Assembly: GCA_002269645.1 (NCBI GenBank)
Contig: NIVC01001441.1
Span: 62,001-126,000 of the forward strand
Source: Macrostomum lignano
Taxonomy: Eukaryota
Direction of reading: 5' to 3'
Length of the DNA stretch: 64,000 bases
Part shown: positions 25,201 through 28,200 of the stretch, piece after piece
How positions within the stretch are numbered: position 1 is the first letter of the stretch
Layout of the letters: each line of letters begins with the position of its first letter
Position numbers and translations under genes: made by a program
The notes under the pieces: generated by a model
What the model was told of the DNA's origin: nothing
The model's database searches: none
The model's input: only the letters and a program-made list of their open reading frames with translations

Positions 25201-28200
25201 CAGGGGATTACCAGGGATACTAGGGATACCAGAGATACCAGAGATACCAGCGGATACCAGGGATACCAGGGATACCAGAGATACCAGAGATCCCAGGGAT
25301 ACCAGGGATACTAGGGATACCAGAGATACCAGAGATACCAGGGGATACCAGGGATACTAGGGATACCAGAGATACCAGAGATACCAGGGGATACCAGGGA
25401 TACAAGGAATACCAGGGATACCATGGGATCCCAGGAATACCAGGGATACTAGGAATACCAGAGATACCAGAGATACCAGGGATCCCAGGGATACTAGGGA
25501 TACCAGAGATACCAGGGATCCCAGGGAAACCAGGGATACTAGGGATACCAGAGATACCAGAGATACCAGGGATCCCAGGGAAACCAGGGATACTAGGGAT
25601 ACCAGAGATACCAGAGATACCAGGGATCCCAGGGAAACCAGGGATACTAGGGATACCAGAGATACCAGAGATACCAGGGATCCCAGGGAAACCAGGGATA
25701 CTAGGGATACCAGAGTGCCAGAGATACCAGGGATCCCAGGGAAACCAGGGATACTAAGGGATACCAGGGATACCAGAGGCAATGATGACACCAGCAACAC
25801 CAAGGAGTACGATTGATTCTGGCAGCCCCAGGGATACCAGGTGCAACCGGGTGCTGTCAAGCACTTGAAAAGCGGCATTTCAAAAAGCAACTGTCAACAG
25901 TTCAGAGCGTGCAGCAGACGGACTTTTCAGAAGCGGCATACAAGGGTAAGTGGCGCATGAAAGCAGCAAGCGGCCTTGGCCAGGCCTCAGTGTGCAGCCA
26001 CCAGCCATTCCGGGTTGCTCTCCGCAAAAGTTTTGAAATGAAAAGGAATGCCAAACTCCAAGCCATGCTGCAGGCTGTGCAATCAGCTTCAAGGCCTGCG
26101 TGTTTACCATTATCTTGCTTCATTCTTACCAGAAATGAGCAAATCACGTAGAAAGAAATAAAATATGGATAGCCGATGAGCTGCTGGCACACCGGCTCCT
26201 CCTGAGTCCGGTTATGCGCCAGCCAATCAACGTAGGCATCGCTGGCCCGGTCGCACTTGGTGTCGGCTGGAAGCAGCGGGGGGTTCGGGAGCGTGAGATT
26301 CGCCAGGCTGGGGACTCACCAGGAATGAGCACAGCATGTAGAAGCTGATAAAAAATGGATAGGCAATCGGACTGCCGCAGCCGTCCTCGATTTCGTCCGG
26401 CTCCAGCAGGTGGATCCGCTCCGCGGTTGAGTTGGCGTAGAGTCGCTGCACTTTGGCAACGAGCCTCGAGTACCAAGTCTGGTAGATTTCGCTCTGCTTG
26501 TCACATAGCACTGTGGGCTCTGTTTAATTGGATTTGCAGCTGTTGGAGAGAGAACGCGGTTTCACCCCACACGAAACTTTTTCTAGATTGGTTGGTTGGC
26601 TGAATTATCGTGTTTGCCTTGTCTAGTTTTCCTACCCCTAACACAGATAAGCCAGCGCCGAGGCCCCATGTAGCTTCTCGCTGATTGGCTGGCTCATTGT
26701 GATTGCCTTGTCTAGTTTTCCTACCCCTAACACAGATAAGCCAGCGCCGAGGCCCCATGTAGCTTCTCGCTGATTGGCTGGCTCATTGTGATTTCCTTGT
26801 CTAGTTTTCCTACCCCTAACACAGATAAGCCAGCGCCGAGGCCCCATGTAGCTTCTCGCTGATTGGCTGGCTCATTGTGATTGCCTTGTCTAGTTTTCCT
26901 ACCCCTAACACAGATAAGCCAGCGCCGAGGCCCCATGTAGCTTCTCGCTGATTGGCTGGCTCATCGTGTTTGCCTTGCCGAGTTTTCCTACCCCTAACAC
27001 AGATAAGCCAGCGCCGAGGCCCCATGTAGCTTCTCGCTGATTGGCTGGCTCATTGTGATTGCCTTGTCTATTGAATAAACTACCCCCTAAAACAGAAAGC
27101 AGCCCTCGTTCGCTGATTGGCTGGCTCATCATGGCTGACTTGTTTTTGTCTCGATTTCCTAGCCTGGCCGGGATATATGTAATTTTTTAAATTTCGCCTG
27201 CAATTTGTCGTTGAACACCAAGTACATCGCAAGAGAATAAAACGTAGTCAACGAGTAAAGTGAATCAAGACACTCGGCTCACCGTTGACGCAGGCCAGCA
27301 GAATCTCCTGCCAGGCCTCGCCCGTGGCTGAGCGAAACAGCACCAGAGAAGCGGAGAAGAACGTCCTGAAGTTGTTGTTCCTGTTAATGTGCGTGTTGGA
27401 GTCCAGCCGGATTTTGCCGAACATCTGCATGCCGATCACGGCGTAGATGAAGAACAGCATGAGGATGAGCAGGGCGACGTAAGGCAGGGCCTGGAAGAAT
27501 TGGGAAGGTACCAGTGAGTACTCACAAACTTTGAGAAGGTCCAACACGATGAAAAAATGAACCAGTACGTGTCTTTAAATCCTTAAGTAACTCATTATAG
27601 ATTACTACATAGATGGCATTAAACCAACCTGAAACGATTTGATAAAAGTCCACAGCAGAGTCCTGAGATGCTCGCCCCTGTTCAGCAGCTTCACCAGACG
27701 CATCGCACGGAAAAGCCGGAAGAAATTAATGGATATGGTGGCTTTGCCAGCCTGCGGAACATCCGGGTTAAAGAGTAGCGGCGTGTTAAATTTCACTCGA
27801 CAAAATATTCTTGCTAATGATACGTTTTAACATACATGAGCAATTACACTACTAACTACAAAAGTAGAATGAAGCAGGATTTTTATCAATTTAAATGCAA
27901 CAAACAATTATGGTGCAACTGGCAGCGGCAGAATCGCGCGCTACATTTTTTAGCAGAAATTTAAGCATCCTGAAACGAGAACTTGAGGGCTTGTTTGCTA
28001 ACACGTAGAATCAAAACTAGCTTTTACAACATAACTGCGAAACCAATGAGGGTGCAGTTGGCAAACAAAGCTCTGAAAACGAAATTTCAAAAGCAAATAA
28101 CCAAAAACTCTTAGAGGCATTTTCTCTTTTAAATTACGGGCGCCTCCTACATCCAGGATGACACCGGAAATGTTGAAGTCTTCAGACTGAGCCGGACAGA

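Follow-up and report, generated by a model that had tools for sequence, protein, structure and literature searches.

Vertebrate Cav1.2 carries three pairs of mutually exclusive exons, 8/8a encoding IS6, 21/22 encoding IIIS2, and 31/32 encoding IVS3, and its IVS6 is constitutive (PMC3596553). The choice between exons 8 and 8a is tissue-specific and alters dihydropyridine sensitivity and block (PMC3596553). The subject here is a 64,000-nucleotide stretch of the Macrostomum lignano genome (contig NIVC01001441.1, positions 62,001 to 126,000 of the forward strand), called the window and numbered from its own first letter. A Cav1 (L-type) calcium-channel alpha-1 gene in this window contains two adjacent homologous exons, named a and b. 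Judged from the sequence, the probability is about 80% that a and b are tandem alternative exons, of which one is included per mRNA so that the gene yields two pore variants. By alignment, both exons encode the turret (L6) of domain IV, an extracellular loop that lies between the selectivity filter and S6 and is closed by a Cys-Cys pair, together with the N-terminal half of IVS6.

Exons 8/8a of Cav1.2 resemble the M. lignano pair in being tandem, same-phase Cav1 exons that encode an S6 pore helix. They belong to domain I rather than domain IV, whereas the M. lignano pair also swaps the preceding turret. In invertebrate Cav3 channels, exons 12a/12b and the D4L6 variants are like the M. lignano pair in providing different cysteine-bounded turrets. 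M. lignano is itself cited as having Cav3 exon 12 variants (PMC7382465, PMC9694082), and the D2L5 and D4L6 extracellular loops alter ion passage and block in Cav3 (PMC7382465). Cav3 is, however, another channel class, its spliced loop is the domain II S5-P loop, and no S6 residues are swapped. The Cav3 D4L6 differences also come from separate genes and not from splicing, unlike the M. lignano Cav1 pair.

Mutually exclusive pore-loop exons give rise to filter variants of NALCN channels in invertebrates, including flatworms. Alternative NALCN selectivity filters resembling those of calcium or sodium channels are reported in PMC3557258. The NALCN exons change the filter residue itself, while the M. 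lignano filter Glu sits unchanged in a constitutive exon upstream of the pair.

The exon pair and its surroundings in the window are listed below in the order of transcription. The window gene belongs to paralogue group A, and its sister Cav1 genes in the M. lignano genome are called paralogues B, C, and D.

27283..27490, minus strand: upstream exon, constitutive; encodes IVS5 and the pore loop of domain IV with the selectivity-filter Glu (ALPYVALL...)
26596..27070, no strand assigned: 5.3 tandem copies of an 89-nt repeat, located in the intron that separates exon a from the upstream exon
26320..26519, minus strand: alternative exon a, 200 nt; donor GTGAGT; acceptor at 26519 conserved in paralogues B, C, and D
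26267..26319, minus strand: intron between a and b, 53 nt, read from the sequence
26130..26266, minus strand: alternative exon b, 137 nt; acceptor ...cttccAG, donor GTAAGA
24525..24652, minus strand: downstream exon, constitutive; encodes the C-terminal half of IVS6 and the first part of the C-terminal domain (IINLFVAV...); starts in phase 0

The upstream exon ends in phase 1 (ACVN/G, the slash marking the junction) with the donor GTGAGC, and its peptide is 100% identical across three contigs that are allelic or homeologous. Both a and b have a length of 2 mod 3 and start in phase 1. The consequences for the reading frame were demonstrated by joining the exons in silico. With either a or b between the upstream and downstream exons, the frame is open throughout. 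With both included, a stop appears inside exon b, 41 codons past the a/b junction, and with neither, a stop appears three codons into the downstream exon. Since both exons are 2 mod 3 in length, including both or neither therefore ends translation early. The joining bears out the initial annotation, which had described the phases, the splice sites, and the frame shift on double inclusion.

Exon a is preceded by two in-frame AGs that are 9 nt apart (window 26511-26521, aaacAG/AGCCCACAG/TG). The upstream AG starts the exon at 26519 and adds 'EPT' to its peptide. The second acceptor, 9 nt downstream, gives a start at 26510 and a length of 191 nt, also in frame. The start at 26510 was the one originally annotated; that acceptor exists, but the conserved one is at 26519. 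The upstream AG matches the paralogue acceptors ('DPSVLCDK', 'DPQKVKCD') and the outgroup sequence 'NEPNVRCDK'; of the two AGs, both are present in paralogue D and just the upstream one in paralogue C. Because the upstream AG is conserved in the paralogues and matched by outgroups, a length of 200 nt is most likely for exon a. The two acceptors could yield isoforms with and without Glu-Pro-Thr.

The two exons were found on the minus strand with the sequences and the shared motif first reported for them, C-D-x-x-S-(E/D)-x-Y ... C ... YP(F/Y)FISFY(ML/VI)CSFL. Their peptides are 35% identical over 62 residues in tblastn (E = 4-8e-8), and with the recurrence of the pair at eight further loci of the genome, this homology exceeds chance. 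Exon a has 41 residues between the turret cysteines, the glycosylation sequon NST, and FYML in IVS6. Exon b has 21 residues, the sequon NRT, and FYVI, and all of these readings agree with the earlier ones. In an alignment with human Cav1.2, both exons begin just past the filter helix of domain IV and extend over the Cys-bounded L6 loop into the first half of IVS6, and exon a is longer than Cav1.2 by some 30 inserted residues. The Met in the Cav1.2 IVS6 sequence 'FYMLCAFL' corresponds to Met in exon a and to Val in exon b, and this position had been singled out as a dihydropyridine determinant.

The host gene occupies roughly 58.5 kb to 18 kb of the window, on its minus strand, and is, by homology, a Cav1 (L-type) alpha-1 gene. 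Open frames for repeats I-IV were found on this strand, and the M. lignano models that match the window carry PF00520 (Ion_trans). The filter reads directly as EEEE: TMEGW (I), TGEDW (II), TFEGW (III), and TGEAW (IV). The matching models also carry the C-terminal domains PF16905 (EF-hand/GPHH) and PF08763 (IQ), with the IQ motif in the open frame 21490-21789. Both exon peptides are present letter for letter in two M. lignano UniRef models. In the protein homology search, the best relatives are L-type channels. Solved structures of Cav1.2, Cav1.3, and Cav1.1 score E = 7.5e-293 to 1.4e-283, those of Cav2.x 9e-222 to 4e-211, and Cav3 about 1e-100 or weaker; the gene is classed as Cav1 because its values are far better for Cav1 than for Cav2 or Cav3.

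Paralogues were surveyed by a six-frame search of the whole assembly (764 Mb, 5269 contigs, the window lying on C1441), followed by tblastn on the fetched loci. The a-then-b arrangement is present at nine loci in four paralogue groups:

Group A (C1441, C2813, C2823): exon a 200 nt, exon b 137 nt, spacer 53 nt
Group B (C282, C1668): exon a 167 and 176 nt, exon b 143 nt, spacer 88 nt
Group C (C1069, C1707): exon a 206 nt, exon b 140 nt, spacer 95 nt
Group D (C1457, C1194): exon a 218 nt, exon b 143 nt, spacer 75 nt

The length of 2 mod 3, the AG acceptor, the GT donor, the phase, the Cys pair, and the S6 motif are kept in 18 of 18 exon copies, and all length changes among paralogues are multiples of three. 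The introns of the paralogues are unalignable. In the flanking constitutive exons, the synonymous divergence (dS) between paralogues ranges from 0.7 to saturated, the ratio of nonsynonymous to synonymous divergence (dN/dS) is 0-0.05, and the proteins are nearly or fully identical. The downstream-exon peptide is identical in the four groups though its synonymous sites are saturated. Across the four groups, exon a has a dN/dS of 0.23-0.45 and exon b one of 0.09-0.54, and the S6 half and the cysteines are conserved in both.

The two exon types differ in a consistent way. Every a exon has a long loop (29-47 residues), the sequence 'CGS(P/S)IAYP', and FYM(L/V)C with an invariant Met. Every b exon has a short loop (21-23 residues) and the motif 'CDxxSDxYxxW', and where a has Met, it has Val, Ile, or Thr. 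In paralogue B, the exon a turret also contains a CAG repeat whose length differs between the copies on C282 and C1668 (7 against 10 Gln).

In a tree of 34 alignment columns with weak support, the b exons cluster, the a exons of A, C, and D cluster with the first exon of a contig from the Logan collection described below, and the a exon of B is unresolved. From this grouping and the presence of the pair in all four groups, the a/b duplication is older than the split of the M. lignano Cav1 paralogues, and the conservation indicates that selection has retained both copies in all of them. Each of the four sister Cav1 genes thus probably makes two pore variants. The protein identity of about 35% between a and b, together with the same arrangement on three separate contigs (C1441, C2813, C2823), excludes an assembly duplicate, one of two possibilities that the initial annotation had named as fatal to its proposal. 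The other was that a single exon is found in transcripts while its twin decays neutrally; neutral decay does not fit, as both exons are kept across the four groups with dN/dS below 1.

A similar pair is found on the Logan contig DRR639055_7511, which was retrieved by a search of cluster representatives with exon a. At positions 813-1126, two exons of 137 and 119 nt follow one another in tandem, 58 nt apart and equal in phase. Their S6 motifs are FYMICSFL in the first and FYIICSFM in the second.

In the nemertean Lineus longissimus, the Cav1 RefSeq isoforms form two sets, and it is precisely this region that sets them apart, its loop being long (for example, XP_064631930) or short (XP_064631955). 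Either version is used, not both. As in M. lignano, the Lineus genome has two tandem exons of equal length modulo 3 (175 and 217 nt, both 1 mod 3) for the turret of domain IV plus the first half of IVS6. The Lineus pair differs in its order, short then long, in its spacer of about 690 nt, and in its intron position, with an earlier start (R/SATGEAWQ) that includes the filter region. Its IVS6 halves are identical (FYILCSFL), and its exons do not cluster with M. lignano a or b in the 34-column tree. Given the different intron position and the placement outside the a and b groups, the Lineus pair is probably of independent origin.

A pair at this site is thus not unique to M. lignano, since the Lineus analogue is already contained in RefSeq isoforms. 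The literature search returned no paper that describes a domain IV turret/IVS6 pair in Cav1 or flatworm Cav1 splice variants. The original suggestion that no IVS6 exclusive pair had been described is consistent with this search, but one is implicit in the Lineus isoforms. The original account of the vertebrate pairs in IS6, IIIS2, and IVS3 agrees with PMC3596553.

Lineus longissimus also has adjacent copies of a domain III pore-loop exon (OU342998.1, 53327-53404 and 53561-53623) that read ...NFDDV(T/S)QAML(A/T)LFTV(S/A)TFEGW, which suggests a further alternative pore exon pair in its Cav1 gene. No second copy of the domain IV exon was present in the Tubulanus, Physella, and Lottia loci, each of which has a single copy. 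Clusters from Mercenaria, rotifers, crabs, spiders, Bradysia, and bees likewise contain one version each and no second. These single copies indicate that the pair is not general in Spiralia or arthropods. Two versions of the region in one Anopheles protein cluster resembled splice variants and were rejected, being separate genes that are 74% identical overall.

In the proposed mechanism, the spliceosome would join the upstream exon to a or b and then to the downstream exon, with mRNAs that contain both or neither presumably removed by nonsense-mediated decay. The a form would have a long, variable, glycosylated turret and the invariant Met in IVS6. In the b form, a short turret bearing the CDxxSDxYxxW motif would go with Val, Ile, or Thr, all beta-branched, at the same position. 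This switch may tune how ions enter or are blocked at the outer mouth, and at the fenestration it may affect gating or the access of lipids and ligands; the choice of exon is probably cell-type-specific.

The initial annotation had proposed that the variants differ in drug sensitivity. Gln to Glu in IIIS5 and Tyr to Phe in IIIS6 are cited as causing loss of dihydropyridine binding, and Met to Ile at the third position is also cited (PMC6796685). In the schistosome Cav1 channels, the IIIS5 position is occupied by Glu, the Tyr position in SmCav1B by Phe, and the Met position in both channels by Ile, and their insensitivity is attributed to substitutions at these dihydropyridine positions (PMC6796685). 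In the constitutive exons of the window gene (32700-32900 and 34868-35179, minus strand), the IIIS5 Gln is replaced by Glu, and in IIIS6, Tyr is replaced by Phe and Met by Val. The window gene thus lacks the mammalian-type set of dihydropyridine residues, and the IVS6 Met occurs only in exon a.

Val or Ile is the usual protostome state at the IVS6 Met position, and FYVLC is read in 101 of 120 relatives. Exon b accordingly shows the ordinary state, and the Met of exon a is vertebrate-like. With three other determinants already replaced, the toggle is unlikely to switch dihydropyridine sensitivity on or off. Both points weaken the drug proposal, and a drug-sensitivity switch through Met/Val is doubtful. 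A physiological role is more likely. The turret could alter ion access, block, or extracellular interactions, and the IVS6 residue, at the position that faces the III-IV fenestration in solved Cav1 structures, could affect gating or access through the fenestration.

The alternative use of a and b may be real and yet matter only in the extracellular turret, through a partner, a toxin, or ion access, with the IVS6 Met/Val difference a neutral passenger. The Lineus exons, identical in their IVS6 halves and different only in the loop, favor this account, as do turret lengths and sequons that differ consistently between a and b. Met is nevertheless invariant in the M. lignano a exons and in the first DRR639055 exon despite saturated synonymous change, and all second exons carry Val, Ile, or Thr. 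Met in every a exon and a beta-branched residue in every b exon suggest that the IVS6 position belongs to the selected difference. A role confined to the turret is possible and, on this balance, somewhat unlikely.

Several observations weigh against the alternative use of a and b. Protein searches with full-length, 228-aa, and 587-aa queries, whose matches covered lengths of 125-2966 aa, returned no transcript-derived M. lignano sequence of the region, only genome-derived models. The search of cluster representatives with exon a likewise gave no transcript-derived M. lignano fragments. The transcript-based GenBank models PAA70953 and PAA72656 (paralogues C and D) end before domain IV. The genome-derived models handle the region in five different ways:

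A0A1I8IQR8 and A0A1I8GUC8: exon a fused in frame to a truncated b through a cryptic AG
A0A1I8I3D7: partial exon a
A0A1I8GT10: both exons skipped
A0A1I8FGX9: intron read-through
A0A1I8H277 (paralogue B): upstream exon joined directly to exon b

The direct junction to exon b in A0A1I8H277 speaks for alternative use. Further observations against it are a spacer of 75-95 nt in paralogues B-D, which is in the ordinary intron range, and RNA duplex scans that revealed no conserved docking/selector pairing, with a signal in paralogue A only and none in C or D. The dN/dS values were computed on about 45-70 codons per exon with saturated dS. In paralogue B, the exon a turret has a polyQ run, no sequon, and has lost the CDK-SD-Y motif, and in paralogue D, exon b reads FITLC and has a long branch. 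These two exons could reflect relaxed constraint in single paralogues. Set against these points, frame logic, conservation, and the Lineus precedent lead to the inference that a and b are used in a mutually exclusive way.

One of the exons could instead be a dead duplicate, a pseudo-exon that is never spliced in, with a single channel made. The protein searches without transcript support and the models that use only part of a or skip both exons are compatible with this. A neutral copy would, however, not survive as both exons have, keeping frame, phase, splice sites, Cys pair, and S6 motif in four groups near synonymous saturation, where the introns are unalignable and every exon length change is a multiple of three. 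A dead duplicate is therefore very unlikely.

The second exon could also act mainly as a regulatory 'poison' cassette, whose joint inclusion lowers channel output without a second protein. Double inclusion does give an early stop, and a species whose introns are short might be able to remove the 53-nt intron. A conserved protein is not needed for such a role, yet exon b keeps the Cys pair, CDxxSDxYxxW, the sequon, the S6 motif, and dN/dS below 1, and the Lineus parallel is annotated as protein-coding either/or isoforms. Such a cassette is thus highly improbable. Least probable of all is the inclusion of both exons with the frame rescued by a cryptic acceptor in exon b (ccaAG/TGCGAC, junction 26320 to 26255), since the two models that contain a followed by truncated b in frame come from genome annotation (A0A1I8-series accessions) and look like predictor artefacts beside sister models that skip, truncate, or read through the region, the cryptic AG is simply part of a Lys codon and has no in-frame counterpart in paralogue C, and a product with one and a half IVS6 helices and two turrets misfits channel topology.

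The 53-nt spacer between a and b is exactly as first reported. In three Cav1 loci, all other introns seen are longer (minimum about 80-90 nt); the literature search turned up no figure for the smallest introns of M. lignano. Some 26 nt from the exon a donor is a candidate branch point, CTCAC, followed by a pyrimidine-rich tract, as read from consensus. The other paralogues have similar donor-proximal candidates with long pyrimidine tracts after them.

In alpha-tropomyosin, exons 2 and 3 are kept apart by steric exclusion, the branch point being close to the upstream donor. M. lignano resembles this system in the short distance from the first donor to the likely branch point of the second exon and in the long pyrimidine tract that follows. 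Its branch points are, by comparison, only consensus guesses, and the spacers of three paralogues are longer. Steric hindrance of a-to-b splicing is plausible at the 53-nt intron of paralogue A, where the likely branch point near the donor may contribute. The spacers of B-D show that it is not general, so the steric block first suggested applies at best to paralogue A.

Incompatibility of U2 and U12 splice sites is ruled out in the window and the paralogues, as all donors are U2-type, resembling GT[AG]AG, and none resembles [AG]TATCCTT. A 19-nt stretch in exon b (26214-26232) is complementary at 17 of 19 positions to a motif in every unit of the 89-nt repeat (26679-26697 and five further units). 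In the C2823 copy, the match is 18 of 19, and the only coding difference there, Val to Ala, improves it. This complementarity between exon b and the satellite is specific to paralogue A and may be due to chance. RNA docking/selector pairing as a general mechanism was rejected because the signal is confined to the satellite motif of paralogue A.

The Cav1 gene has a second candidate exclusive pair, this one for the IIIS2-S3 linker and IIIS3. It consists of two exons of 107 nt each (38489-38595 and 36706-36812, minus strand), which have AG/GT boundaries and are 58% identical over 24 aligned residues. Each of the GenBank models of paralogues C and D ends in one of these two versions. Nearly every long intron of the Cav1 gene (17000-59000) has its own distinct tandem-repeat array, with periods of 4 to 183 nt and sizes up to about 2 kb. 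Downstream of the gene on the minus strand are an alpha-tubulin open reading frame (ORF) and an EF-hand, myosin-light-chain-like ORF (3508-5088 and 9962-10432), both apparently intronless over the stretch examined.

The S6 helices and extracellular turrets of four-domain channels set gating, permeation, and the access of drugs and toxins. Among the S6 helices of vertebrate Cav1.2, only IS6 has an exclusive exon pair. The a/b pair would give four flatworm L-type genes two domain IV outer pores each, doubling the repertoire at a site that is constitutive in vertebrates. The finding also corrects the annotation of M. lignano gene models, which fuse, truncate, skip, or read through the region.

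The apparently independent pair in nemerteans suggests repeated selection for switching this part of the pore. That the turret and the Met/beta-branched switch at the III-IV fenestration form an old, conserved feature of flatworm Cav1, with convergence in nemerteans, is put forward tentatively and at less than even odds. If true, the convergence would suggest a general means by which gating or access to the pore is tuned. Flatworm Cav1 is of interest as an anthelmintic target and has resisted pharmacological study, and the existence of two pore isoforms would matter for expression and ligand work. If parasitic flatworms share the pair, it could explain the variable ligand sensitivity of their Cav1 channels.

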